IMG/VR virus record: IMGVR_UViG_3300029893_000001
Coordinates: 124,001 to 188,000 of that record
DNA length: 64,000 bases
Strand: one strand, 5' to 3'
Shown here: positions 1,281-63,412 of the stretch, piece after piece
Layout of the letters: each line of letters starts with the position of its first letter
Numbering within the stretch: the first letter of the stretch is position 1
Translations under genes and position numbers: made by a program
The notes under the pieces: model-generated
What the model saw: only the letters and a program-made list of their open reading frames with translations
Database searches by the model: none
What the model was told of the DNA's origin: nothing

Positions 1281-1466
1281 GCGGTGACAGGTTTTCGACC
1301 GAGTCTTATGTGGCCTCTCTTACTGTGCCTAAAACATCGTAGGTTAACAGCAGTGAGCATGGGTGTTTTGTTACCTACGCACCCTGGCTAGTCCACCTTT
1401 CCGAAGAAAGGGAGGAACATCGCTGTCTTAGGGCCGTTAGTGTAGACCGCAGTCTGCATTCACCGC
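1281..1466 (-). ncRNA. Y RNA-like ncRNA (Ro-binding-type terminal stem plus a non-tRNA structured payload)
   Basis: GCGGTGA-ATGC-AGACTG(C)GGTCT-ACA ... AGACT-CGGTCG-AAAACCTG-TCACCGC, the same bulged stem as 2367-2430 and 2728-2876. Confidence 0.65.
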
Positions 1467-1477
1467 GAGATATGATC

Positions 1478-1628
1478 TCAGTCTTATAGGTAACTGCTGC
1501 TTTATGCGGGGAGCTTTCACGATTTGCCCTTGGCTTTCACGGTTGCCCGTAAACACGAGTCCAGCGCGCTAGACATGGTGCCGCTCCCTCACAAGGGCCG
1601 CCTAAAACATAGTTACCTATAAGACTGA
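1478..1628 (-). ncRNA. orphan structured RNA closed by a perfect 18-bp helix
   Basis: Inverted repeat 1478-1495/1611-1628; internal GCCCTTG/CAAGGGC and GGGAGC/GCTCCC pairings; GCAA tetraloop. Confidence 0.5.
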
Positions 1629-1637
1629 AACCAGATC

Positions 1638-1883
1638 TCAACCTTTCCTAACATGTATTTCAGCGTCGGCGTCACCATCTATTACGTGATAGTGGGTAAC
1701 AGCGGTCACACAGAACTTCTTAGGTTCATCCCGCTGGGGATGTGTTGCAGCCCCAGAGTTGGGGAGAACGACAAACTCACCCACACAAGGTACACGACTG
1801 AAACAGATAGGAACTGAATCCCACTTGCGTAAGCTTAGTTCGTCCTCAACAACAACCAAAATCTTAGCACCGATTTTACTCAT
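1638..1883 (-). CDS. hypothetical protein
   Basis: 81-aa ORF in the dominant orientation. Confidence 0.6.
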   Translation of the reverse strand: MSKIGAKILVVVEDELSLRKWDSVPICFSRVPCVGEFVVLPNSGAATHPQRDEPKKFCVTAVTHYHVIDGDADAEIHVRKG

Positions 1884-1900
1884 CCTGTTTGCTCTTTACA

Positions 1901-1973
1901 CTCCGACTCCTGGATTCGAACCAGGGACCCGCGAGTTAACAGCTCGCCGCTCTGACCGCTGAGCTAAGTCGGA
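1901..1973 (-). tRNA. tRNA-Asn(GTT)
   Basis: TCCGACT/AGTCGGA acceptor, CTGTTAA anticodon loop, GGTTCGAATCC. Confidence 0.95.
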
Positions 1974-2311
1974 ACAACACCTACTAAACCTGCATGAACT
2001 TCTGCATGACAATTTGAGCAGAGTAATACGCATTTGTCTAGTTCATCCTTCACCTTACTCCAAGCTCTGCACGCACCAACGGCAGAAACGCCAAAGTCCT
2101 TCTCCTCTGGGTCCAAGTGATGGAATACTAAGGCGCCGTAACAACGAGAATACCCACACAGTTGACATTTGCCTCCTTTGTAGGAAACTGCTCGTTCCTT
2201 ACGCCTTCTTCGAAAGAGAATGATATTACATCCACTGCACACTGTTCTGCGGTGGCCCTTCGCGCGATCGTATTCATATCTTCTACCACAATTCTTACAT
2301 GTGCTCGACAT
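1964..2311 (-). CDS. HNH endonuclease
   Basis: CxxC pairs, FHHLDP...CVLLCSNCHAEVH; stop codon lies inside tRNA-Asn. Confidence 0.85.
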   Translation of the reverse strand: MSSTCKNCGRRYEYDRAKGHRRTVCSGCNIILFRRRRKERAVSYKGGKCQLCGYSRCYGALVFHHLDPEEKDFGVSAVGACRAWSKVKDELDKCVLLCSNCHAEVHAGLVGVVPT

Positions 2312-2366
2312 GTAAGATAGGTAAGCTGCGGTTATCGACTGTTGATAACCGCTACCTCGGAAAAGT

Positions 2367-2430
2367 GCGGCGACAGGTTTACATCGAGAGGTTACAGTTT
2401 GCGGATGTACTCCCGAATGGCATTCGCCGC
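2367..2430 (-). ncRNA. minimal Y RNA-like ncRNA (stem only)
   Basis: GCGGCGA-ATGC-CAT(T)CGGGAG-TACAT ... CTCTCG-ATG-TAAACCTG-TCGCCGC; matches the GNCGAAN(0-1)G motif. Confidence 0.65.
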
Positions 2431-2437
2431 GAAAGTT

Positions 2438-2480
2438 GCCGGTGGGCAGGAGCGCTGGGTAGCGTCCTTTCCCTTCGACC
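2438..2480 (-). ncRNA. possible fourth minimal Y RNA-like hairpin
   Basis: GGTCGAAGGG-AA-AGGA-CGCT-ACCC-AGCG-C-TCCT-G-CCC-A-CCGGC; GTCGAAGG fits GNCGAANG. Confidence 0.35.
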
Positions 2481-2594
2481 GAAATCAGGCGTCCGGCACA
2501 CCTTGGGACTCGTCTTTAAAATAGACACAGGCAGCGCAAGTCATTCTGCGTCACACCCGCGCACGGGTGTCTGTGAATGGACGTAGTTCTTAAA

Positions 2595-2727
2595 TTTGTG
2601 GACTGCTGGGATACCACGGCCATCTACCCAACCAGCCCCTAGCAACCACTAGATGGTACGTACGTTATTACGCCCGCACGCTGGCGGAGGGAGTATTGTT
2701 GGAGGGAACTCCCACAGAACCCACAAA
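2595..2727 (-). ncRNA. orphan structured RNA
   Basis: Closing helix TTTGTGG..CTG.GGGA/TCCC.GCAG.CCACAAA; internal GGGAGT/ACTCCC and CCATCTA/TAGATGG helices. Confidence 0.4.
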
Positions 2728-2876
2728 GTGACGACAGGATTTGTCAGGGACGCTTTTGAGGTGCGACCGTATCACTACAGTTGTGTCTACCAATTTCCAC
2801 CACAGCAGCCAAGTGGCTGCTGACGGGATTCGAACCCGCATGCACTTGTATGTAGTCCCGTGACAGCATTCGTCAC
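2728..2876 (-). ncRNA. YrlA-type Y RNA (Ro-binding stem plus circularly permuted tRNA mimic)
   Basis: GTGACGA-ATGC-TGTCA(C)GGGAC-TACAT stem encloses a T-arm GCGGGTTCGAATCCCGT, a looped acceptor CAGCAGCCA/TGGCTGCTG and a D-arm TGGTGGAAATTGGTAGACAC, in T-acceptor-D order. Confidence 0.8.
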
Positions 2877-2917
2877 GAATTTGGCTTTCCGTATTCAGTT
2901 GTCAATCAACCACCCCT

Positions 2918-4344: not shown

Positions 4345-4728
4345 AATCTCGTGTATTAGATCTGAGTGTCTGCGTCATTCTGTTAGACCACCTCTCCGCA
4401 CGTAGCTCAATCCAGGAGGGGATTAGGGGAGGGGTCAAGATTGAGCTACGTGCGGAAAGGGCTGGATTCGCACCAGCATTTCAGACATGTCATCACGAGA
4501 ATTCGAGATGGTGATCGGACAAGACCTCCAAACTTAGGGAATAGCCTCAGCTTTACGTCTAAGTCCGAAGTAGCGCTGCCTCTTCCAGTTGGGCTACCTC
4601 CCCATACTCAGCGGGGAAGGAAGGATTCGAACCTCCACTGTAGCGTCTTCAGATCAGTTTGATTCTGAGTTTGGTCCCTACGGAAATCCCAAGGGAAACC
4701 CGAGTACAAGTCGGAACCCCGGGGAACT
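4345..4728 (-). ncRNA. ncRNA with two circularly permuted tRNA-like domains
   Basis: Domain 1 at 4564-4653 and domain 2 at about 4345-4503, each in T-arm / closed acceptor / D-arm order; G-U pairs only work on the minus strand; own promoter motif at 4736-4751. Confidence 0.75.
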
Positions 4729-6632: not shown

Positions 6633-6643
6633 ATGGTGGGTAA

Positions 6644-7041
6644 TGGACCCGCTGGTATCGAAACCAGGTCCTCGAACGCCTAACTGACTCCGCTACGTGT
6701 GTAGTCTCATTTACCCGCAGATTACGCGCTGCAGGAAGCCGAGACAAGCACCGCGAGGGGCACAACGGCCCTCCACCACTAACCCTTTAGACTTAGCTCG
6801 GTCGGGTCAGAAACCGAGGTGCAACCCGAGTCGATGAGCCGCAGAGGACTATCGGGTGTCCTCCCCTGCGACACCTCACGCCGCGAGGGGCAGAGGCTCG
6901 GCGGTGCCATTGTCGTTAGCAACGACATTGCCGAAGAGGGAAACTACGTTGTTCGCAGTTCTTCATGGGCTTTTAACGAGGCCAGCCCACCTCGACACGC
7001 AGAATCAGGTCGGTTCGTCCGAGTCGAAGCCTTTCGGGCCC
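6644..7041 (-). ncRNA. ssrA: tmRNA; tag reading frame 6956-6876 encodes ANNVVSLFGNVVANDNGTAEPLPLAA*
   Basis: Acceptor GGGCCCG/CGGGTCC-A with the G3:U70 pair, GGCTTCGAC, PK1 (GAGG-TGGGC..CCTC..GCCCA), GACTACACACGTAG, tag ending in LAA. Confidence 0.92.
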
Positions 7042-15574: not shown

Positions 15575-16603
15575 TTACCTGTCCCACTCGTTGAACTCGA
15601 CCTTCTTCGTCATCCAGTGTTCGTCTGTCTGCACGTGATGACTCCGCACGTATTTGCCTACGACGTGCCGAAACTCACTATAACGAAACGAGTCGGCCAC
15701 CCTAACTACGTGGCCTTCGCACTGGTTTCCTTGGAATTCAGCTTCATACAAGCTGCGAATCTGGGTCTCATCCCATTCTCCATCATAGAGTACAGGAACG
15801 GTTTTTAGACCAAGCATATCGCAGTAACTGACTGTGTCGTCCCAAGACAGACACACATTCCACTCGTTCCAGATGCTAAAGACCTGAAAGAAGTGAGGGA
15901 GATTCTTGTAGCGAATCGAATGTACCGCCGATAGATTCTCGCCGCAAATCCTCCAGCGCTCAGGAATCTCGTGCGAAAACTGCTGCCAAAACGCCTTCAT
16001 CATCCCCCTAGACTCATGGGTCGTGTAGCTCAAAGCCCGAGCATGGATGAAGTCGCGGTACAATGATGTGTTCTCTCCGTCCATCTTGACGGTTGCAATT
16101 ACCCGGCGCCCCTCAAAACCTCTCGTAGACGACATAATCTTGTCGTCGCTAGTAGCTCCGGGGGACCAAGGGAGATGAAAGGTTCTCGGGTACTTCACAA
16201 TATGTGTGAAGTCCATCAATACAGGAGCGAGAATCGACTGAACAGACTCCTCATGAAACAGCTCCCCTGGAGTCCTTCGAGACGATTTTTCGTCCAGGTA
16301 TGGGTTGCCCCACTTGTCATAACGACCAGAAGAATCAAGATGGGGAGGAAGTAGAATCTTCTCGATTTTGCAGAGACGCCGAAGCTCCTCACATGAAACT
16401 AGCGTCTGCTCAGCCTTGTAGTGACACGGCTCGCATACCGAAGCCCCGTTGTCAAGATAGTAACCACCATCTGGCCAAAGGCGCCGTTCAATGATGTGAT
16501 GAGCATCGACCGCAGGAGCCCCACAGACGACGCACTTGTACGAATCCCGAGAAAATACAGCCTCTCGGAATTCATCTCGGGTAAGAAGTCTGTGGATTGA
16601 CAT
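15575..16603 (-). CDS. RNA ligase (ATP-dependent, Rnl2-like family) with an N-terminal HNH domain
   Basis: KYPRTFHLPWSPG..DDK, KMDGEN, ICGEN, EGHVVR, KYVR; N-terminal CVVC..DAHH..CEPCH. Confidence 0.85.
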   Translation of the reverse strand: MSIHRLLTRDEFREAVFSRDSYKCVVCGAPAVDAHHIIERRLWPDGGYYLDNGASVCEPCHYKAEQTLVSCEELRRLCKIEKILLPPHLDSSGRYDKWGNPYLDEKSSRRTPGELFHEESVQSILAPVLMDFTHIVKYPRTFHLPWSPGATSDDKIMSSTRGFEGRRVIATVKMDGENTSLYRDFIHARALSYTTHESRGMMKAFWQQFSHEIPERWRICGENLSAVHSIRYKNLPHFFQVFSIWNEWNVCLSWDDTVSYCDMLGLKTVPVLYDGEWDETQIRSLYEAEFQGNQCEGHVVRVADSFRYSEFRHVVGKYVRSHHVQTDEHWMTKKVEFNEWDR

Positions 16604-16936: not shown

Positions 16937-17238
16937 GAGGCCTTTCCCTTGTACGACTGAGGCCCAGGTACATACGTAATCCCTGGCAAAACGCCATCTG
17001 CAGGAAGAAATCCATGCTGGATGTAGTAGAGCACCTGAGCTTTGCCATAGTGCTCATTCACGATTCGAAGCCAAGATCGGGCTGTCTGATCGTCCCGATA
17101 ACGGCCCTCGCGACGAGAGTACATTGAGTACACAACATTGCAGGTCTCGACGCATTTCTCGTACTCCTCTTGCATCCTAGCTTCCAGCCCGGCGATGCAG
17201 CACTCCAAAACTGCAAGTCTACTTTCAAGGCTTTTCAT
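16933..17238 (-). CDS. hypothetical protein
   Basis: Coupled ORF. Confidence 0.6.
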   Translation of the reverse strand: MKSLESRLAVLECCIAGLEARMQEEYEKCVETCNVVYSMYSRREGRYRDDQTARSWLRIVNEHYGKAQVLYYIQHGFLPADGVLPGITYVPGPQSYKGKAS

Positions 17239-18179
17239 ACAGCCCTCAAGTATTCCTCAACAATCGACACACAAAGCTCGTCTAGCTTGTGGACAGGAGG
17301 TGTATGACGAAGAGTAGAAGTCGCGTAGAGAGTGTCAGCCTGCTTTTCTAGCTTGTCTGCTTCTTCCAAGAGTCGCTCATACGTCCAAGCCCCGTTCCGA
17401 ATTGCCAAAAGCTCGTCAGCATCGGGGCGCTTGACCAGGACACCCTTTCCTTCAAGGATTTCAACGCACATGCGCATTAGACGCATTAAGTGCATGCCGT
17501 GCTTGGTATCGTAACCATACTTCGCCTCCAACGCAGCACGGTCCTTATTCCGGGTCGCCTCCCAATTCTTGTACTGCTTCCAATGCTGGAGGGCTGCAGC
17601 ATATTGCTTTTCTCGCTGAATGGCGGTCATGACTTCTCCACCAAAGGAGTACCCAGACGCCGAAAGCTCGTCAAAAGCTCCCATGATGGAGCCGCTGACT
17701 ACTTTGTTACCCTCATCCGGAAGCCCAAAGTCCGCCCGACTCGGCTTTTCCCTTGGAGGGTTTAGCAACCAACTCCGGTGTGTCCGAATCCTCTTGAGCT
17801 GGGCATGGGCGTAACCGGAAAACGTGAATTTCGCTTTCTTTGAAAGAAAGAGATCCTTGGCCTCCAACAGCCTCTCACCAAGCTTATTCACGAAAACATG
17901 GTCAGACTCATGAGTGTGCAGCACCTCGATGATATTAGGGTTGCAGTCGGCCGCCAGCTTGATGAACTTTCGAATGTCGAACACGACCTTGTCATGAGGG
18001 TGGCCGTTGGACACCAGCTCTTCGGACTGCTCAAAGTTAAAGGCGTACCCCAGGAAATACTGCTTCGGGGGAATAGCCACACCTTTGTAGTCGGTATCCG
18101 AAGTGGGCGTGCTAGTGCCATACGCACGGCTGCCGTGTACGGTTAGGTAGATCGTGTGCTCTTTGATGTTGAATTGCAT
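17235..18179 (-). CDS. DNA polymerase beta-superfamily nucleotidyltransferase (RlaP-like)
   Basis: GSRAYGTSTPTSDTDYKG, NPNIIE, YDTKHGMHLMRL, LLAIRNG. Confidence 0.88.
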   Translation of the reverse strand: MQFNIKEHTIYLTVHGSRAYGTSTPTSDTDYKGVAIPPKQYFLGYAFNFEQSEELVSNGHPHDKVVFDIRKFIKLAADCNPNIIEVLHTHESDHVFVNKLGERLLEAKDLFLSKKAKFTFSGYAHAQLKRIRTHRSWLLNPPREKPSRADFGLPDEGNKVVSGSIMGAFDELSASGYSFGGEVMTAIQREKQYAAALQHWKQYKNWEATRNKDRAALEAKYGYDTKHGMHLMRLMRMCVEILEGKGVLVKRPDADELLAIRNGAWTYERLLEEADKLEKQADTLYATSTLRHTPPVHKLDELCVSIVEEYLRAV

Positions 18180-21023: not shown

Positions 21024-21791
21024 TCAGTCGTCCTCGTCATCCCAATCATCGAACGAGTCGTCATCTTCATCGTCGTCCTCAGGCGGAGGAGCTGGCTTCT
21101 TGGCCGGCGAAACAGCGACCTTTTTCTTGGGAGGGGGAGGAAGATCATCCTCGTCCTCCTCGTCCTCATCCTCGTCGTCATCATCGTCGTCGGACGGCGG
21201 GACGGGCTTCTTGGCGGGTTTGGTGGGTGCCTTTTTCTTGGGAGGGGGAGGAAGATCATCCTCGTCCTCATCCTCCTCGTCGTCATCATCGTCGTCATCA
21301 TCGTCAGGCGGAGGAGTAGGCTTTTTAGAAAGCGCAGGCTTCTTTGGCGTGGGTGCCTCGTCCTCGTCATCCTCGTCATCCTCGTCGTCGTCATCGTCGG
21401 GCGGCGGAGGAGGTGCTTTCTTAGGCGCAGCAGTTTTGGGAGGGGGCATCGTTGCCTCCTCGTCGTCATCCTCATCGCCGTTACCAGACTCTTCCGATTC
21501 GGGGGGAGGAACAGGAACTGGATTCTTTCTCGGTCGCCCTGGCCCACGCTTCACAGGAGCGGTCGTTGACGACGTTGTTGTCGGGGTGGGCTCCGCCTTC
21601 GTAGGCTCGCACCCCGGATTCCAACTAATAGTAACAGCGTCAGCGCTGTCCATCTCAAGCGCAATGATCATCCCGCGAATGACATCGTCAGAAACGCCAG
21701 ATCCCTTAACGATTACCTCGCCGGACCTACGCACAAGAATGTCTAGAAGATGCTGCACCAACATCTTCTGCTCGGTCTTAGAAAAAGCCAT
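21024..21791 (-). CDS. AT-hook protein with alternating acidic and Pro/Lys repeats (HMGA/histone-chaperone-like)
   Basis: KRGPGRPRK followed by repeated PPP-D/E(n)-LPPPPKKK blocks. Confidence 0.75.
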   Translation of the reverse strand: MAFSKTEQKMLVQHLLDILVRRSGEVIVKGSGVSDDVIRGMIIALEMDSADAVTISWNPGCEPTKAEPTPTTTSSTTAPVKRGPGRPRKNPVPVPPPESEESGNGDEDDDEEATMPPPKTAAPKKAPPPPPDDDDDEDDEDDEDEAPTPKKPALSKKPTPPPDDDDDDDDDEEDEDEDDLPPPPKKKAPTKPAKKPVPPSDDDDDDEDEDEEDEDDLPPPPKKKVAVSPAKKPAPPPEDDDEDDDSFDDWDDEDD

Positions 21792-23046: not shown

Positions 23047-24150
23047 CTAATTATACTCCGTACCGTCCTTACGCAGCAAATAATCCGCACTGACGGATTT
23101 GAGCTGAACACGTCCGATCTCGTTGGACCGGCGCTCCTTCAAAGGCCGAACAATTACTCCCTCACGAATGTGCATCTGCTTACCAGAGACCGATTCCTTA
23201 CCGTCCGTCCACTGTGCCAAGATTTCCTTGCTAAATGGCCCTCGATATAGGACAGGAACTCTGGGAAGATCAAGAAGGTTCAAGAAAGCGTCCAGCTCAT
23301 CATCGTCCAAATACCGGGCCTCAGGAGAGCCGGGCCGTCCTACAAAGACATCGAACACGCGAAACCCTAAGGTGTTATCCTGACCACTGCTTGCACCGTA
23401 GGCCAAATCTTGAACTCCTCTACCGAAAACCTCTCCAAGAACGTACACGGGGTAGCCGTCAAGAAGATAGCCTGCGCCGCTGCAATGCTCACGAAGTTTC
23501 TCAATAACACGGTTTGCCCGAGCAGCCCGCATGTACAGATTTTTCTCGTTCTTCTCATTAGGCTTAAGTGCGAGCCCCTGGGAACTCATGCCTTTTGAGG
23601 AGATGAGAATATCTCCGTACTTTTCATGAGCCATCGTGGACGGCAAAACACCTATCATGCACCAAGTACCGTGAATTTTCTCAGTGAAAACAACGGGCTC
23701 ACCTTCTCGGATAATCTCTGGGTATCGCTTGAAGTTCTCGATATCGTATTTCAAGCACTTATCCTGCCCCGCTGCGTACACCTCACCTGAGAGGTGAGCG
23801 GGTACGGGAGGAACGTACTTGATGACTCCGAGTTCCTCAACAACATTTTGGCCTTCCGTCCAATGTGGACGACAAGGATAGCAAAGCCCCTGAGACAGAA
23901 TTCCACGCAGGCGGACTGCCTTTACACGGTCATGATTTGACCCCGCGAGCCGTCCCTCCAAACCCATCTCCCGAATCAAATCGATCGGAAGTATGGACTG
24001 CTCTGGAATGTAAGCAGCGAGATCGCCAGTCTTGTATTGACCCTTGCGAACGATTGAGAGATAGTCGCCGATCCGTGCAAGTTCTAATGCATCAGCATTA
24101 GGGTGTTCCTCGATCGTAAGGCGAACTACTTCGACCTTGTGCTCAGACAT
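23047..24150 (-). CDS. RNA ligase, DRB0094/Rnl5-like, with an N-terminal OB fold
   Basis: HPNADALEL, EKIHGT, LGEVFG, FRVFDV, REGVIVR, LKSVSADYL; GGAGG RBS before ATG 24150. Confidence 0.9.
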   Translation of the reverse strand: MSEHKVEVVRLTIEEHPNADALELARIGDYLSIVRKGQYKTGDLAAYIPEQSILPIDLIREMGLEGRLAGSNHDRVKAVRLRGILSQGLCYPCRPHWTEGQNVVEELGVIKYVPPVPAHLSGEVYAAGQDKCLKYDIENFKRYPEIIREGEPVVFTEKIHGTWCMIGVLPSTMAHEKYGDILISSKGMSSQGLALKPNEKNEKNLYMRAARANRVIEKLREHCSGAGYLLDGYPVYVLGEVFGRGVQDLAYGASSGQDNTLGFRVFDVFVGRPGSPEARYLDDDELDAFLNLLDLPRVPVLYRGPFSKEILAQWTDGKESVSGKQMHIREGVIVRPLKERRSNEIGRVQLKSVSADYLLRKDGTEYN

Positions 24151-24177
24151 GGTAAGCCTCCAAGTTTGGAGTGCATC

Positions 24178-24193
24178 ACTATCGTTAGGGTTC
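24178..24193 (-). promoter_or_regulatory. phage promoter-like motif GAACCCTAACGATAGT
   Basis: Motif copy upstream of the RNA ligase. Confidence 0.7.
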
Positions 24194-24202
24194 AGCGGTC
24201 CG

Positions 24203-24784
24203 TTATTGTCCGTCAAAAGGCAAGGTCAACTCGTAAAACCTACGTAGAAATCTATACCTCGCCACTTCAGGCGTCCACGGCTCAATACCTAGTTCACTAT
24301 TCCAAATGTGGAGGCCCTCAGGAGGCTCGACATTGATCTGCTCAAATTTGGGCTCTCCAAATGGAGCCAGGAGATCACGAGCTTCAGCCTTAAGAACAGC
24401 TAAGTCAGCCCACCTAACAGAAGACGGCAGCTCGAATTCCAGTTCAAACTTATCGCATATGGTACGCCATACCTCTTCCTCCAGGCTCTCAAAATCCCGA
24501 AGGTACTTTTTGATTGGCGTAATGACATCCCCTACGTATGCTTCAGTGGCATCGTGCATTAGGGCAGCGAACGCAAACTCCTCAGGAACTACCTCAGAAC
24601 AGTGTACCGAGTGCTCTGCCACAGAGTAGAACTTGTGGCAGTGTCCGCTAAACCGACACAGGTTAGACAGAGACAATGCGATATCTTCGATATGAATGTC
24701 CTCAACGCGTGGAGCAAATGGTCGAAACCTTCGTCCGCTTGCCAGCGTAAACCAACTTTCAGCGCGAGTGTCGAGGATACTCAT
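24203..24784 (-). CDS. HD-domain phosphohydrolase (YfdR/5'-deoxynucleotidase-like)
   Basis: IEDIA..LS..CRF.GH, YSVAEHS, LMHDATEAY.GD. Confidence 0.9.
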   Translation of the reverse strand: MSILDTRAESWFTLASGRRFRPFAPRVEDIHIEDIALSLSNLCRFSGHCHKFYSVAEHSVHCSEVVPEEFAFAALMHDATEAYVGDVITPIKKYLRDFESLEEEVWRTICDKFELEFELPSSVRWADLAVLKAEARDLLAPFGEPKFEQINVEPPEGLHIWNSELGIEPWTPEVARYRFLRRFYELTLPFDGQ

Positions 24785-31426: not shown

Positions 31427-32701
31427 TTAAACGTCGAGTATCTCGTCGACTTCAAAATGAGCCGATAGGGGCTCGCTTGTCAGTAAGCATTGCAAGTACG
31501 TCTTCAGTTCCACACGGTCCCAGGTTACAGGAACCAATCGAGCGTCACTCTCGTCTGCCGCAAGGGATAGATACTGCACAACTCCCTCCGCAACGAGGGC
31601 TGAATATGTGTCGCTGTCAAGTTTCCCCTCGCTGTGCATTTCGACAAGACGAGAAAGAAAAGAATAGACTTCCGATGCCTCGGTGCATGTCTGGATCCTG
31701 CTCTTTACAGTACCAAGCCAAGCGTGCCTGTCGAGTACTTTTGAGTTCAAGAGAGGCAGAAGTCCGGATGTGGTGACCAGGGGGTCACCCAACCTGAACC
31801 CAGACAGAGTCCGTGTGATGTGGCTCTGTACCACAGAATCGCTGATCGTCGATCGGCACATCCCGGACAATTCGGGAAGTAGTGACATCAATAGAGAAGT
31901 CTTCATTTTCTCAGTGAACTTCAGCGAAGGCTCTACTCGACACAACGCTTCGCACGCCAAAAGCAACCGCACCATAGCGCGCCCCTGCCGGGCCGACACA
32001 TGCACAGGAGGATGAGGCTCCGTACGTAGGGTTAGCATGAGGCTACGCACGACGCCACGGACTTTCGCCTGGTCTTCTTCAGAGAACGTATAGCTGCGAG
32101 CCGCGTCGATCGTTTGCCTAAAGCGGAGTAGTGCCTCGGGACAGACCCGCTCGTCTAAACCGTCGGGCAAAGAGAGTACGGTGTCAAGGTCAGGGCCGGA
32201 CAGGCAATCTGGAACTCGAACAATCGAAAATCGAGATGCAACTGCTGGATCTAGATAAACTGTGTCGTACACTCCTCCTGGAGGATTTGCAGACGCAAAG
32301 ACTAACTCCAAAACGAGAGAGCGCCCCATTACCTTCTTCGTACGGACTATTTCCATCGTCTTGGACGCGATGAAAGGATTCACTCGATTGAATTCGTCCA
32401 GAAGAACGCTTTTTGCGCCCCAAATTGAAATCTCAGTATGAGCATAAGTTACCAAACCACCCTCCCGAAGGGAGGCCGGATTCGCATACCCCAAAAGGTC
32501 ATCCTGATGAATAAGTCGTGTGTCATACGACTGAAATCGGGCATCTCTTCCAAGGGTCGCATACGTCAAGATCTCTGCGCCTTCTGTCTTATTGGCGCCG
32601 TGACTTCCGACAAGCATCAAAGGATATCGTGCAACGAGAGCGGAAAGAACAGTTGCTTCGATATCCCTCCAGCCGATGATTCCGATGTTTTCGAGCATCA
32701 A
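31427..32701 (-). CDS. MoxR-type AAA+ ATPase
   Basis: GSHGANKT, LLDEFNR, ASANP, LDPAVASRF. Confidence 0.85.
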   Translation of the reverse strand: MMLENIGIIGWRDIEATVLSALVARYPLMLVGSHGANKTEGAEILTYATLGRDARFQSYDTRLIHQDDLLGYANPASLREGGLVTYAHTEISIWGAKSVLLDEFNRVNPFIASKTMEIVRTKKVMGRSLVLELVFASANPPGGVYDTVYLDPAVASRFSIVRVPDCLSGPDLDTVLSLPDGLDERVCPEALLRFRQTIDAARSYTFSEEDQAKVRGVVRSLMLTLRTEPHPPVHVSARQGRAMVRLLLACEALCRVEPSLKFTEKMKTSLLMSLLPELSGMCRSTISDSVVQSHITRTLSGFRLGDPLVTTSGLLPLLNSKVLDRHAWLGTVKSRIQTCTEASEVYSFLSRLVEMHSEGKLDSDTYSALVAEGVVQYLSLAADESDARLVPVTWDRVELKTYLQCLLTSEPLSAHFEVDEILDV

Positions 32702-34218
32702 TCCCCCAGAGTCGGGATCGTAATTACCTTTGTCGCGAGAGCGTTAAATCCACGCTTGACGCCCTCTTGTGTTTGAATCAAGTACAGATACTGCAACTGC
32801 TTCTTCAGCTTGGAGATGAGTGCTGAACTAAGCGTGTCAGTGTTATCGGTGAGGACAATAGCCTCCTTGCATCCCGAACGCAGCATGTGCTCCCCTACTG
32901 CATGATAATTCGTTCCTCCGGTGCTGAAGATGTAATCCTCATCCGGATTCACAACGACGACCGTATCCGAAAACTGAAGATGCTCGTCGACAAATTCAGC
33001 AAGGTAACGATGGATAAGCAGCATGACATGCATGAAACTCCACATCGAACCAGAAACGTCAACGTACAACTTTAGAGTATGTTTTGTAACCGGTAGGTCC
33101 ACAGTCCAAAGAGTCACGTCATAGCCTGAAGCTACCAAAAACATGTCTCTGCGATGCAAGCCTTGAAACTGTGCGCTCTTGCCTTGATACACCTCGTCGC
33201 CCTGTTTTCTCGCCAGGACATCACCTACCAAATCAGCGACGATGGTATCTTCAATCTCCATCTTCAAGTTCATCTCCGCAAAGAGAGACTGGAATTCCGG
33301 AGGGCATTCGTTGGGGGAAAACGACTGAAGTACCTGCCGAAGCGCTGGTGGTAATTCTTTGGGCGAGCTTACCCTGTGCCCAGGAACGGCCTCTCCGTTG
33401 ACATCACAACGAGAGACGCCAGTACCATAATCTATTTCGATCAAGTCACCTAGAGGTGAGACTTGAGTACGAATTGGACAAGAAGGGGCGTCACGATCGT
33501 CGATGAGATCCCCCAGCAGATCACCAGAAACTATTGAACCTAAAACATCAGCCCGTTCAGTATCCGAAAGCAGCCCTTTTTCCACAAGGATCCCGATTTC
33601 CATCCACTCCGAATACGTGATCTTTTGAGTGAAAAACTCGGCTCCTAGTGCTACTTCGCGAAGTAAGTGCATCCAACGAGGACCCACATAAAACCGTAGC
33701 CATTCATGATTTTCGGCCACCCAACGCGTGAATTGCTGACATAAAAGCGAACGGAAGAACTTGTGCGAGTCACTATACACTCGCTCACACAGGTCAGAAT
33801 TCATCAGGAACAAAATCGTGTTGTTGATGTAGACGTCCTCCCAAAGGTTCGCAAATTTGCGTTCCTTGAACGCAGGCATCTGCGAGCCATACACCAGTGA
33901 AATGAGTACGTGACCTCGCTCGTGAAGAAGTATGAAAAGCAAATCGCCAAAGCTTTCCGCGGCACTCAGAAAAAACTCAGTGCCTATCGTGAGCACGCGA
34001 TTTTCAAGATTTACGTGCGCTGTCTTTTCGGCAGTATCAAATCTAAGACCGCTTACGAAAGACAACGTGTGATGAACGGTCCGTGCGGACGGCAGCCGTA
34101 CAATTTCGGCCCAATAGTCAAGCGCTTCGCTGCAGTACAACGAATCCAACAGCGCCTGTTGGGCTCGTTGGAGGTCGCCAGACCTAAGCGCCTCCCGAAT
34201 CGGTTCTAGAAGAGTCAC
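32698..34218 (-). CDS. HExxH metallopeptidase-like plus C-terminal vWA protein (MoxR partner)
   Basis: LLHERGH, YVDVSGSM, GGTN, VLTD. Confidence 0.8.
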   Translation of the reverse strand: MTLLEPIREALRSGDLQRAQQALLDSLYCSEALDYWAEIVRLPSARTVHHTLSFVSGLRFDTAEKTAHVNLENRVLTIGTEFFLSAAESFGDLLFILLHERGHVLISLVYGSQMPAFKERKFANLWEDVYINNTILFLMNSDLCERVYSDSHKFFRSLLCQQFTRWVAENHEWLRFYVGPRWMHLLREVALGAEFFTQKITYSEWMEIGILVEKGLLSDTERADVLGSIVSGDLLGDLIDDRDAPSCPIRTQVSPLGDLIEIDYGTGVSRCDVNGEAVPGHRVSSPKELPPALRQVLQSFSPNECPPEFQSLFAEMNLKMEIEDTIVADLVGDVLARKQGDEVYQGKSAQFQGLHRRDMFLVASGYDVTLWTVDLPVTKHTLKLYVDVSGSMWSFMHVMLLIHRYLAEFVDEHLQFSDTVVVVNPDEDYIFSTGGTNYHAVGEHMLRSGCKEAIVLTDNTDTLSSALISKLKKQLQYLYLIQTQEGVKRGFNALATKVITIPTLGD

Positions 34219-60526: not shown

Positions 60527-63412
60527 TCAGGCAGCATTTGCTAGCAACTCTGGATTCTGGAAGCAGGTCTCGCGCCGAGCAATTGCGTTCCATGGCGTAC
60601 CAGATTTTAGCTCCTTATCCCACGAAGCACACTTTTCGACAATTCCAGGAAGTTTTGCTTCAACACCATCAAACCCGAGCATGTGTCCCCACCGAACACC
60701 GAGATCAAAGTCGATCTCCATCGGAACAATCATATCGATTCCAAACTCCTGCTTCAAGAAATCAGGAATTGAATCGACCATCATCTCCTTGAATAACCAG
60801 ATTGCTTCTTGGATCATCTCGAAATCTAGAGGAACCTCAAGAGTGATTGCGTCGTGAACACAGTTGATGACGTAAAAGGGTCGCCCATTCTCCTCAATCC
60901 AATTTTGGATTCGCCAGGCTGCCAACGCCGTAGTGTCCGATGACACCGCCTGAATCGGTGAATTTCGCGCCCTGCGGCGGCCGGCACCCTCATCCAACTC
61001 AAACAAGTCACTAAGGTGACGCCGCCGACCCATCGGGGTCTGCACTATTCCTGTAAGGAGAGCCTGCTTTTCGATTTCCGTGAGCCACTTTCCAGCCTTC
61101 GGGAATTCCTTTACGAACGTCTCCTGGAGAGCAAGTGCCTCGTCTGGGTCGATACCAAGAATTGAAGCGAGCGTCTTGTAGTGCTGCCCATAAATAGATC
61201 CGAAGCAGAGGGCCTTCGCCTTCTGCCGGATATCCTTCGTTACGTCGGCCAACGCCAAGCGGAACATCAGGGAGGCGACCTTCTTGTGAATATCACACTC
61301 CAATTTCACACGCTTGCCTAGATCTGCGTCGCCAGTACGCTGATACTCCTCTCGCAAAGCCTTCATCTCAGCAAAAAGCTTGGCGTATTGCTTGTCGCCG
61401 GATATTTGGGCCCACCACCTAACTTCTGCCTGACCGTAATCGCACTCGATCAAAACATATCCGGGACGTGCTCCATACATCGAACGAATGAAGGCTTTAG
61501 CCGTCCACGGGTCGCCTTTAGGAAGCTGCTGCAGATTCGGGTCAGAACTCGATAGCCGTCCAGTAACAGTTCGAATGGCGTGGAAACCAGCATGAATACG
61601 CCCGTCGGCAGAGTTATCAGGCTTCGAATAGAGAATGTCATCAATACTGTTGAGGTACGAGGTTTGTAGCTTGTACAGACCGCTGTACTCCTGATATAGT
61701 GAAACTAGGTTATGACCCTTGTACTCCTCAAAGTACTGCTTGTTGATAGAAGCTTTCCCGTCCTTACCCCGGTTTAGAGGCTCTAGCCTACAGCTATCAA
61801 CGAATAAATGGATCCGGTGAAGCCTCTTATTGATGTCCAACACCCAGGGCTTCTTCCCGAACAAGGGCCTCATGCCCTTAGTTCGAGAATCCTCGCCTAA
61901 CAAAATGTCGTTGGCCTTCTTTGCTTCTGCGCTTGCATAGATTTGAGTTGGTATCTCCTCCAGGCGAGAAATGATGGGAGACTCGTCTGACTGAAGATAA
62001 GCAAGCTGATCCGGATCCACGGCAAAACCGTTCATTGACATCTTGGTCAAGAGCGGAGAAATCCGGCCATACCACCGAAGTGCGAACCGAAGAGCGCCAT
62101 CGTAGCCCTGTCGCTCTAACCAACGCCTGTAGAAGTAAAACAAGCGGAAGGTGATGTAAGCATCAGTTCCACCGTATTCAGCCAAACGGTCGAGAGACAG
62201 CTCCCAAAGACTGCCTCCGTTCGCGCCGTGGCGGGCCGCCATGGCATCAGAAAGCTCTGTATCATAGAGATAGAACCCTAAGTGCTCTCGGGCCAAATCC
62301 TTGAGACGAAAAGCATTGAAGTCCTTCTTGCCCTTAGAGCCGTCGTCCTCGCCGGCCTGGTTCTCATCCTGCAGGTACGCCAAGAACTGAGTGTCAATGA
62401 CAGGCTTTCCGAATGTCTTGACTCGCAGAAATTTCAGAGCAATTGATATATCGAACTGAGAGTTGTGCGCGATCCAAAAAGGGAACTTAGATGCCCTGGA
62501 GGAGAACAGCTTGAACAGCGCCTTCTTGACGTGCCTCTTCTCTTCTTTGGTAGTCCACGGAGCACCCCAGTGGTCTACGGGAAAAACGTAAGCAAGATCA
62601 GAATCTGCCGAAAGCTGCAGAGTGGCGATTTTGTTCTTTGCCACCCTATTCAAGTTTCTGGTTTCAAAGTCGAACGCAACCGGATGTGTGCACTCGTTCA
62701 TGAAATAGTTGACTGCTTTGTCAACCTTCTCCAGAGTATCACATACGACTACGCGACCCTTACGAGACCACTTCGTCTCCTCTCCCGTTAAAAGCCTGTG
62801 GACGGACTTGATATGGCGAAAGAATCTCCGCTTCTCAGGGCCGTTGTTCGATCGGAGGTAGGCACCGTTGTTCGATCGGAGGTAGGCAGAAGGATGGACC
62901 GTAGCAAGATGAATTCGACCGTTTTTCTCGTAAATCTGGCCCTTGATGGAGCCGATCTTCTTGCCCTTCCATTCAGGGTTGGTAGAAAGCGCCTGAACGG
63001 CTTGATTTCCAACAAAAACTACAATCTTAGGATTGAGTTGCTCAATGTCTTTCTTTATGTAATTCGAGCAGGCTGCCACCTCTTCAATTGTTGGTGGTCG
63101 ATTATTGCCGCTGTCATCCACGGGCCGACAACGAACGGTATTGCCAATAGCATAGGAGTCTGAAACTCCAGCCTTAGAGAGCGCAGCTCGTAGCTCCGCA
63201 CCCGACTCGCCAGCAAAAGGGTAGCCAACTTGGTCTTCTGTTCGTCCTGGAGCCTCCCCTACGAACAGGATATCGACTTTGGGTGTCTCACCGTCTTCGC
63301 CGACGTCGTTGTAGACGACATCAGTAGGCACGTAAGTAGTACGGTGGCGTTTATCGCGGAAGAGGGGACAGCCTTGGCAGAAGTCCTGCTCTTGACGTAG
63401 CAGAGCACGCAT
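60527..63412 (-). CDS. polA: family A DNA polymerase with N-terminal family-4 uracil-DNA glycosylase and 3'-5' exonuclease (SPO1-type architecture)
   Basis: GEAPG, VRCRP, HPS (UDG); FDFET (exonuclease); TGRLSS.PNLQ, DYGQAE, R..AK...FG..YG, VHDA. Confidence 0.95.
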   Translation of the reverse strand: MRALLRQEQDFCQGCPLFRDKRHRTTYVPTDVVYNDVGEDGETPKVDILFVGEAPGRTEDQVGYPFAGESGAELRAALSKAGVSDSYAIGNTVRCRPVDDSGNNRPPTIEEVAACSNYIKKDIEQLNPKIVVFVGNQAVQALSTNPEWKGKKIGSIKGQIYEKNGRIHLATVHPSAYLRSNNGAYLRSNNGPEKRRFFRHIKSVHRLLTGEETKWSRKGRVVVCDTLEKVDKAVNYFMNECTHPVAFDFETRNLNRVAKNKIATLQLSADSDLAYVFPVDHWGAPWTTKEEKRHVKKALFKLFSSRASKFPFWIAHNSQFDISIALKFLRVKTFGKPVIDTQFLAYLQDENQAGEDDGSKGKKDFNAFRLKDLAREHLGFYLYDTELSDAMAARHGANGGSLWELSLDRLAEYGGTDAYITFRLFYFYRRWLERQGYDGALRFALRWYGRISPLLTKMSMNGFAVDPDQLAYLQSDESPIISRLEEIPTQIYASAEAKKANDILLGEDSRTKGMRPLFGKKPWVLDINKRLHRIHLFVDSCRLEPLNRGKDGKASINKQYFEEYKGHNLVSLYQEYSGLYKLQTSYLNSIDDILYSKPDNSADGRIHAGFHAIRTVTGRLSSSDPNLQQLPKGDPWTAKAFIRSMYGARPGYVLIECDYGQAEVRWWAQISGDKQYAKLFAEMKALREEYQRTGDADLGKRVKLECDIHKKVASLMFRLALADVTKDIRQKAKALCFGSIYGQHYKTLASILGIDPDEALALQETFVKEFPKAGKWLTEIEKQALLTGIVQTPMGRRRHLSDLFELDEGAGRRRARNSPIQAVSSDTTALAAWRIQNWIEENGRPFYVINCVHDAITLEVPLDFEMIQEAIWLFKEMMVDSIPDFLKQEFGIDMIVPMEIDFDLGVRWGHMLGFDGVEAKLPGIVEKCASWDKELKSGTPWNAIARRETCFQNPELLANAA
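62841..62888. repeat. 24-bp perfect tandem duplication (AYLRSNNG x2)
   Basis: ccgttgttcgatcggaggtaggca occurs twice in tandem. Confidence 0.9.

Follow-up and report, generated by a model that had tools for sequence, protein, structure and literature searches.

A large, dispersed family of predicted Y RNA genes with exchangeable payloads in the tRNA island of a 392-kb phage that encodes Ro60

Y RNAs and Ro60 are conserved from bacteria to humans. Here we describe three small elements, A, B and C, on the minus strand of a 64,000-nucleotide (nt) stretch of phage DNA (hereafter the window), which corresponds to positions 124001-188000 of the IMG/VR contig 3300029893_000001 (392,328 bp; the same phage has been deposited in GenBank as DYGH01000002.1). 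Judged by their sequence and predicted folding, the three are Y RNAs of the bacterial YrlA/YrlB kind, and we consider it likely that they are three of at least 12 small Y RNA genes of this phage, whose products pair up with the Ro60 protein that the phage itself encodes. What is new here is that the Y RNA family of this uncultured 392-kb phage is unusually large, dispersed and modular, and that it includes a candidate ribosomal RNA (rRNA)-mimic class. An earlier note, made from the window alone, had reported Y-RNA-like genes that share a conserved Ro60-type stem and differ in exchangeable payloads; model searches, covariation and linkage to Ro60 genes now confirm this observation, and the interpretation that the note attached to it is supported in part.

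Three elements in the window

Folding reveals a common order in A, B and C. On the 5′ side, a 7-bp terminal stem ending in YGA is followed by an unpaired AUGC, by a second helix (helix 2) with one bulged C or U, and by UACA or ACA; on the 3′ side, the payload is followed by the return strand of helix 2, an unpaired AAxCCUG and the return strand of the terminal stem. As the earlier note had claimed, the terminal stems differ in sequence (GUGACGA/UCGUCAC in A, GCGGCGA/UCGCCGC in B and GCGGUGA/UCACCGC in C) yet remain complementary in each case. A strict descriptor (NNNNNGA directly before ATGC, ACA no more than 22 nt on, and CCTG with a perfect complement of 7 nt after it) gave three matches in the window, all of them on the minus strand, and 200 dinucleotide-preserving shuffles yielded no match, in agreement with the places and the layout that had been described for the three elements.

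Element A (2728..2876, minus strand; 149 nt) is a YrlA-type Y RNA, identified by the Rfam YrlA model, by a covariance model of our own (R1, below), by its fold (z = -3.8) and by comparison of its D-arm. Its terminal stem (2876-2870/2734-2728) encloses AUGC at 2869-2866 and AAUCCUG at 2741-2735, the bulge in helix 2 is a C, and its payload is a permuted tRNA mimic made up of a T-arm (2839-2823), a closed acceptor-like stem-loop (2822-2803) with a stem of 8 bp, a Leu-type D-arm (approximately 2802-2782) and one extra hairpin. The D-arm, GUGGUGGAAAUUGGUAGAC, resembles those of the phage's own tRNA-Leu genes, GUGGCGGAAUGGCAGAC. Element B (2367..2430, minus strand; 64 nt) is a hairpin-only Y RNA, identified by R1, by its fold and by short counterparts found upstream of Ro60; it consists of the terminal stem, the AUGC/AAACCUG loop, helix 2 with a bulged U, and a short closing loop. 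Element C (1281..1466, minus strand; 186 nt) joins the Y stem to a payload of about 130 nt that has no tRNA features, and its identification draws on R1 (via the stem), a positional orthologue, an alignment of C-type elements and a comparison with 23S rRNA. Within C, the terminal stem (1466-1460/1287-1281) is accompanied by a 23S-like block, CUAACGGCCCUAAGACAGCGAUGUUCCU, at approximately 1440-1413 and a UUCG-capped hairpin at approximately 1416-1392, the remainder being a variable domain. All three payloads are thus as they had been described before.

Two finer points of the earlier description hold in part. A, B and C each have the single bulged pyrimidine, and most of their paralogues lack it. 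The motif GNCGAAN0-1G, said to mark the stem, is found in strict form in A (GACGAAUG) and in B (GGCGAAUG), while C carries GGUGAAUG, which has U instead of C and, as its pairing partner, A instead of G. Five of the 11 full-length copies of the family carry the strict motif and the others vary at one base-paired position, so that the deviation in C is explained by the C of CGAA being a paired position that covaries. A hairpin at 2438-2480 had been put forward as a fourth member on account of a similar motif; GNCGAAG occurs 73 times in the window against approximately 51 expected, R1 gives no match there, and we do not count this hairpin as part of the family.

Family membership and a Ro60 gene on the same contig

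The Rfam YrlA model (RF02553) aligns with A across its full length (31.6 bits, E 2.6e-4), with CGAAUGC, CUAC, the T-arm and AAAxCUUGUCG as shared letters, and it scores the tRNA-type copies of the family at 31.6 to 61.7 bits (E 2e-3 to 4e-12), which bears out the likening of the mimic to YrlA. Model R1, built solely from 11 tRNA-type elements of this phage and its nearest relative, scores A at 76.1 bits (E 6e-17), B at 39.5 bits (E 1.2e-7) and C at 19.2 bits, the last via the stem only. The permuted tRNA-like domain (T-arm, closed acceptor-like stem and D-arm) occurs in eight copies (A and D-I, the D-arm being degenerate in K); because they are without it, B and C are not YrlA in the strict sense.

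YrlA RNAs are tRNA-mimicking Y RNAs described in Salmonella, in Mycobacterium smegmatis and in 22 bacteriophages, some of them mycobacteriophages (Chen et al., 2014; PMC4201824), where assignment required a Ro60 orthologue on the same strand and no more than 4 kb away. The elements of this phage resemble YrlA in their terminal stem, which has (G)NCGAAUGC in its 5′ part and AAAxCUUGUCG in its 3′ part, in the permuted order of T-arm, closed acceptor-like stem and D-arm, and in lying on the same strand as Ro60; R1 also recovers canonical YrlA loci. They differ in scoring below the Rfam gathering threshold, in number (at least 12 copies as opposed to one to four), in being spread over a 30-kb tRNA island rather than within 4 kb of Ro60, in their D-arms, which belong to more than one tRNA class (A and F having a Leu-type arm and E a Glu-type one), and in their acceptor-like stems of 7-10 bp.

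The stems of the family covary. When 11 aligned elements were examined with RNAalifold and their pairs counted explicitly, 94.5% of cells proved to be paired, as against 66% with shuffled partners and 38-48% when partners are slid by 1-3 columns; compensatory double changes are seen in 23 of 27 pairs, and the terminal stem is 100% paired, with six of its seven pairs covarying. These figures bear on the possibility that the elements are decayed tRNA debris, or a mobile repeat resembling a miniature inverted-repeat transposable element and spread by the HNH homing endonucleases of the island, without any RNA function. The elements are indeed interspersed with HNH endonuclease genes and tRNAs, and tandem tRNAs can imitate YrlA matches (PMC4201824), as do junctions of tandem tRNA genes on this contig (e.g., L087:7431-7542), which yield spurious sub-threshold matches. 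However, the terminal 'inverted repeats' vary between copies and are always complementary, which points to selection on RNA pairing and not to a transposase site. Positional orthologues are moreover retained in a phage in which the flanking DHH protein shares only 56% identity with its counterpart here, and no element overlaps a predicted tRNA except I, part of which (L087:11286-11360) is miscalled tRNA-Ile by ARAGORN. We regard an origin as debris or as a mobile repeat as extremely unlikely.

Further evidence for a family of Y RNAs comes from unrelated viruses. When R1 was run on 68 unrelated viral loci that had been picked only for encoding Ro60, it gave 64 matches at E<1e-3, 63 of them on the Ro60 strand and almost all no more than about 1.5 kb upstream of the Ro60 start, the position that canonical YrlA genes occupy. 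Since the model finds its matches upstream of unrelated Ro60 genes, the architecture is the canonical Ro60-linked YrlA type and is not peculiar to this genome. A scan of the viral collection with a TROVE alignment confirmed 368 relatives; this contig is not among the best 80 of the 368, which were the ones listed.

The window itself contains no TROVE/Ro60 gene, as had been noted before: Pfam scans of open reading frames (ORFs) of at least 292 aa on the gene strand and of smaller ORFs nearest the elements found none, and neither tblastn nor a TROVE hidden Markov model gave a significant match to the six-frame translation of the window. The earlier note had looked for the partner in the host or in another phage, and the sequence outside the window points elsewhere, for the same contig encodes an intact Ro60 of 546 aa (L087:11853-13493, plus strand; contig positions approximately 97149-95509), about 27 kb beyond the window start. 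Its Pfam matches, vWA_Ro60 (53.5 bits) and TROVE, the HEAT-repeat ring domain (27.3 bits), are both over the cut-off, it aligns at full length with residues 16-532 of the Rsr protein of Deinococcus radiodurans (PDB 2nvo; E 2.8e-21), it matches PHROG 850 (E 9e-43), and its metal ion-dependent adhesion site motif, DVSGSM, is intact. The gene next to it (467 aa) has no family match. Within the window, a 506-aa ORF at 32698-34218 was considered as a divergent Ro60 and rejected, as neither Pfam nor PDB gave a match and its vWA-like similarity to Ro60 proteins is weak (E approximately 1.7); it follows a MoxR-type AAA_5 ATPase gene (the two together at 31427-34218, minus strand), with which it probably forms a MoxR/vWA pair.

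The note's reading was that the RNAs act on the Ro60 of the host or of another phage, with the stem-only B serving as a titrating sponge. The lack of a Ro60 gene in the window and the lack of an effector module in B would suit such a reading, but because the phage has an intact Ro60 gene of its own, titration of a host Ro60 is unnecessary. Nor is a sponge required to account for B, because hairpin-only Y RNAs such as YrlB and Yrn2 are already known as Ro60 partners in bacteria (PMC4201824), being normal partners of the protein in three characterised species. Short forms (56-72 nt) also lie directly upstream of Ro60 in four phages of this clade: the 72-nt element J here, and counterparts in the relatives L090, L091 and L095. 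Like YrlB and Yrn2, B, J and the short forms of the relatives combine a Ro60-type stem with a small, mostly U-rich loop and stand beside tRNA-type Y RNAs, the features by which they fit the YrlB/Yrn2 type; unlike YrlB, B has no detectable sequence match to the Rfam YrlB model, and its stem module is that of YrlA. A sponge for a foreign Ro60 thus appears quite improbable to us, and we favor the phage's own Ro60 as the partner.

The array that the earlier note recognized does consist of multiple copies, but it is far larger than three: at least 12 copies (A-L) extend over a 30-kb tRNA island, all on the tRNA strand, nine of them outside the window. Four paralogues, H, I, J and K, fill the 1 kb directly upstream of Ro60 on its strand, well within the published 4 kb; all lie within about 0.9 kb of the gene, the last one ending 71 nt ahead of the start codon, with a tRNA also among them and another tRNA directly downstream of Ro60. 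Elements D, E, F and G lie between the window and H-K, as does L, a minimal form of 36 nt (CGGCGAAUGCAACGGGGACUACCUCCUGUCGCCG; L083:10934-10969, plus strand) in which the two halves of the Y stem are fused without a payload, 3 nt before a tRNA gene.

Linkage to Ro60 recurs among the relatives of this phage. In seven related loci from six distinct phages, with Ro60 proteins 37-75% identical, all seven carry one to five elements beside Ro60. In the closest relative, positional orthologues of both A and C occur approximately 18 kb from Ro60; they adjoin the same DHH, tRNA-Asn and tRNA-Asp genes, that of C lying between the two tRNAs. As A and C are kept far from Ro60 in this relative too, dispersal through the tRNA island is a conserved trait. 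Near and distant BLAST searches of the region against 50,697 phage records matched the tRNA genes alone and revealed no close cultured relative.

Several observations nevertheless weigh against counting A, B and C as Y RNAs of the phage's own Ro60. The three lie 28-30 kb upstream of that gene (on the same strand, the Ro60 start being 29.7 kb downstream of the 5′ end of A), as compared with the published criterion of 4 kb (PMC4201824). Every Rfam YrlA score, including that of the best paralogue, falls below the gathering score of 69, B and C have no Rfam match of any kind, and C taken alone is weak with R1 and not significant against 23S rRNA (z = 1.9). A scan for sigma-70-like promoters found no excess (one found, 1.2 expected). 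Finally, a host Ro60 might conceivably play a role.

C-type elements and helices 69-71 of 23S rRNA

The payload of C opens with a block, CCUAAGNNAGCGAUGU, that is conserved in the orthologue of C. Scans for this block in a Y-stem context identified three more viral elements and about 12 metagenomic ones, and a scan of 185,579 reference genomes gave one match, on a 15-kb scaffold of phage-like DNA with 21 tRNAs and Ro60. C aligns with 11 further C-type elements, and the class has at least 13 members; the MAFFT alignment of these is poor at the 3′ ends. All three of the further C-type loci that have enough flanking sequence (L119, L201 and L224) also encode a Ro60 orthologue (45-47% identity). 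Large phage contigs with a C-type element (L104, L119 and L159) carry dense tRNA arrays, with the most tRNAs in L119 and L159, and sub-threshold YrlA matches, and L104 and L159 also contain a transfer-messenger RNA (tmRNA).

Four members, L171, L198, L201 and L205, carry CCGUAACUAUAACGGUCCUAAGGUAGCGA, which is identical to positions 1908-1936 of Escherichia coli 23S rRNA in L171, L198 and L205 and one base off in L201. These positions comprise the apical stem of helix 69 (H69), its complete loop and the strand after it. In the C-type elements this sequence is followed by a GUCGG/CCGAC hairpin like helix 71 (H71) and then by CUAGCGAUGGC, which resembles CUGCACGAAUGGC. Local alignment to 23S rRNA gives z = 6.1-7.5 for L171, L198, L205 and L174, a score that none of 200 shuffles reaches, and all nine C-type elements tested map to the same region (1886-2008 compared). 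The Rfam large-subunit models give no match to C-type elements, the similarity being that found by direct alignment.

C of the window is a drifted member of this class. Its core block is identical to 23S rRNA at 22 of 28 positions and, as its alignment taken alone is not significant, its rRNA likeness rests on family membership. The same is seen with C′, which scores z = 1.0 against 23S rRNA, maps to the same region and aligns with the C-type family. In comparison with domain IV helices H69-H71 of 23S rRNA (E. coli 1906-1975), the likeness resides in CCGUAACUAUAACGGUCCUAAGGUAGCGA, the H71-like hairpin and CUAGCGAUGGC; the C-type payload would be a miniaturised mimic, fused to a Y stem, without the 5′ strand of the lower H69 stem and most of H70, and with a shortened H71 loop. 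We found no description of the C-type class in the searchable literature, which is not proof of novelty.

These relationships lead us to suggest, tentatively and with more doubt than confidence, that the Y RNAs of this group of Ro60-encoding phages (several of them with jumbo-sized contigs) form a general adaptor platform, in which one Ro60-docking stem bears grafted mimics of different translation RNAs, among them tRNA mimics of several identities and a C-type miniature of 23S H69-H71 with an exact H69 loop. If so, the C-type elements would be the first rRNA-mimicking Y RNAs, and a phage Ro60 particle could engage or divert factors that recognize H69, such as the pseudouridine synthase RluD, the methyltransferase RlmH, recycling or hibernation factors, or host toxins that attack this part of the ribosome.

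Payload variety, possible function and genomic setting

Payloads vary widely across the copies. The D-arms of the permuted tRNA-like domains come from different tRNA types, those of A and F being like phage tRNA-Leu, that of E like tRNA-Glu and those of D and G generic, and F also has a hairpin at the place of the class II variable arm. Comparison of the tRNA halves of the mimics with the phage's own tRNA genes indicates that they are not recent copies of these. Payloads change even between orthologues, for the orthologue of A retains the T-arm alone.

A permuted tRNA-like core with a T-arm, a closed acceptor-like stem and a D-arm (UAGCCCAACUGGAAGAGGC) also occurs at 4555..4650 of the window (minus strand) without the GAAUGC/CCUG Ro60-type stem. 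It matches R1 partially (26.6 bits, model positions 42-111 only), receives no call from ARAGORN or from Rfam at the gathering threshold, and is nearly identical to L098:7005-7069 in a relative, where the closing helix differs in sequence and is likewise paired. It is possibly related to the family.

That modules can exist without the stem, as this core indicates, raises the alternative that the RNAs are decoys independent of Ro60, whose tRNA-like and rRNA-like modules soak up, for instance, host defence nucleases that target tRNA or rRNA, or modification enzymes, the stem being a clamp, a processing signal or a terminator. The conservation of the stemless core in a relative, the U-rich tails that follow most elements and the distance of A-C from Ro60 are all in keeping with such decoys. 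On the other hand, the unpaired stem motifs GAAUGC, UACA and CCUG are conserved in sequence across the paralogues and match the Rfam YrlA consensus, which would be needless for a clamp, and the architecture tracks Ro60 genes in unrelated phages, while four copies abut the Ro60 of this one. We therefore think Ro60-independent decoys unlikely, and prefer to view the RNAs as partners of the phage Ro60.

As such partners, the RNAs would dock on Ro60 through their constant end (terminal stem, AUGC/AAxCCUG loop and helix 2), as bacterial YrlA-type Y RNAs do. The variable end would then be an exchangeable module: a permuted tRNA look-alike in A, a loop in B and, in the C class, a reduced look-alike of 23S H69-H71. 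By analogy with known systems, this module might tether or gate Ro60 and an exonuclease, for example host PNPase, toward proteins or RNAs that recognize tRNA or rRNA. Rsr, Y RNA and PNPase acting together in Deinococcus and Salmonella provide a precedent.

The closest experimental parallel in a phage is the Thermus phage phiLo, whose Ro60 binds phage Y-like RNAs with a CGAA bulge and for which a ternary complex of Ro60, Yrl RNA and host PNPase has been demonstrated (PMC12135203). Like the phage described here, phiLo encodes both Ro60 and its own Y-like RNAs (Yrl1 and Yrl2), of stem-bulge-stem form with the CGAA motif; in contrast, it has two RNAs, directly upstream of Ro60, with no tRNA- or rRNA-mimic modules reported (PMC12135203), and the two Ro60 proteins are distant (E 4.5e-12). 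In the E. coli phage Bas63, a Ro60-like protein encoded beside a stretch of tRNAs, gp130, counters the Ppl defence system, and its authors suspected that some annotated tRNAs are really Y RNAs, without defining any (PMC11482910). The likeness to Bas63 is one of layout, a Ro60-like gene adjoining a phage tRNA array.

The positions of the elements suggest how they may be produced. Only 2-4 nt separate F, L and the A and C orthologues from tRNA genes, which, along with the U-rich tails, suggests that RNase P or RNase Z releases them from tRNA precursors; the RNAs would thus probably be excised from shared precursor transcripts by tRNA-processing enzymes. For comparison, YrlA is modified and cut by tRNA enzymes (PMC4201824). 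Upstream of A, a 16-nt block containing TTGACA (GAUUGACAACUGAAUA; window 2899-2914, minus strand) recurs identically at L098:10063-10078 upstream of the orthologue of A; it ends 22 nt before the 5′ stem of A and 19 nt before that of the orthologue. It overlaps a hairpin at 2880-2945 (fold z = -3.1), and there is no convincing -10 element after it.

The island holds approximately 38 tRNA genes on the same strand as the Y RNA genes, along with a DHH phosphoesterase gene, an HNH endonuclease gene and small ORFs. In the window, 13 tRNAs and a tmRNA with an unusual 26-residue tag (6641-7041) are all on the minus strand. Genes associated with RNA repair lie further along: an HNH-RNA ligase fusion (15575-16603), an RlaP nucleotidyltransferase (17235-18179) and a second Rnl-type RNA ligase with an oligonucleotide-binding (OB) fold (23047-24216, minus strand). 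Beyond the two Rnl-type ligases of the window there is one weaker match outside it, and an HD hydrolase is also near. This setting fits a function in the surveillance, repair or protection of translation RNAs during infection, and the set of Ro60 and Y RNAs may be part of an RNA repair and quality-control toolkit of the phage.

Such a genome offers a natural experiment, in which one phage with one Ro60 has a dozen Y RNAs with the same docking stem and different heads, and which bears on how effectors are chosen. If the heads mimic tRNA classes and H69-H71, directly testable effector candidates follow, and the arrangement suggests how large phages may protect or police the translation apparatus during infection. 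It also follows that, in genomes of this kind, most Y RNA genes escape annotation that is confined to the 4 kb around Ro60.

Two further features of the contig deserve mention. A tRNA with the anticodon CUA (an amber suppressor, labelled Pyl by ARAGORN) is located at L083 approximately 21614-21690 (plus strand), roughly 18 kb past the window start; no clear recoding of TAG was seen, for this codon ends 16 of the 75 long ORFs in 99.6 kb of sequence. At 60527-63412 of the window (minus strand), a 961-aa ORF encodes a fusion of a uracil-DNA glycosylase, a 3′-5′ exonuclease and a family A DNA polymerase, whose nearest phage relatives are at most 28% identical to it.

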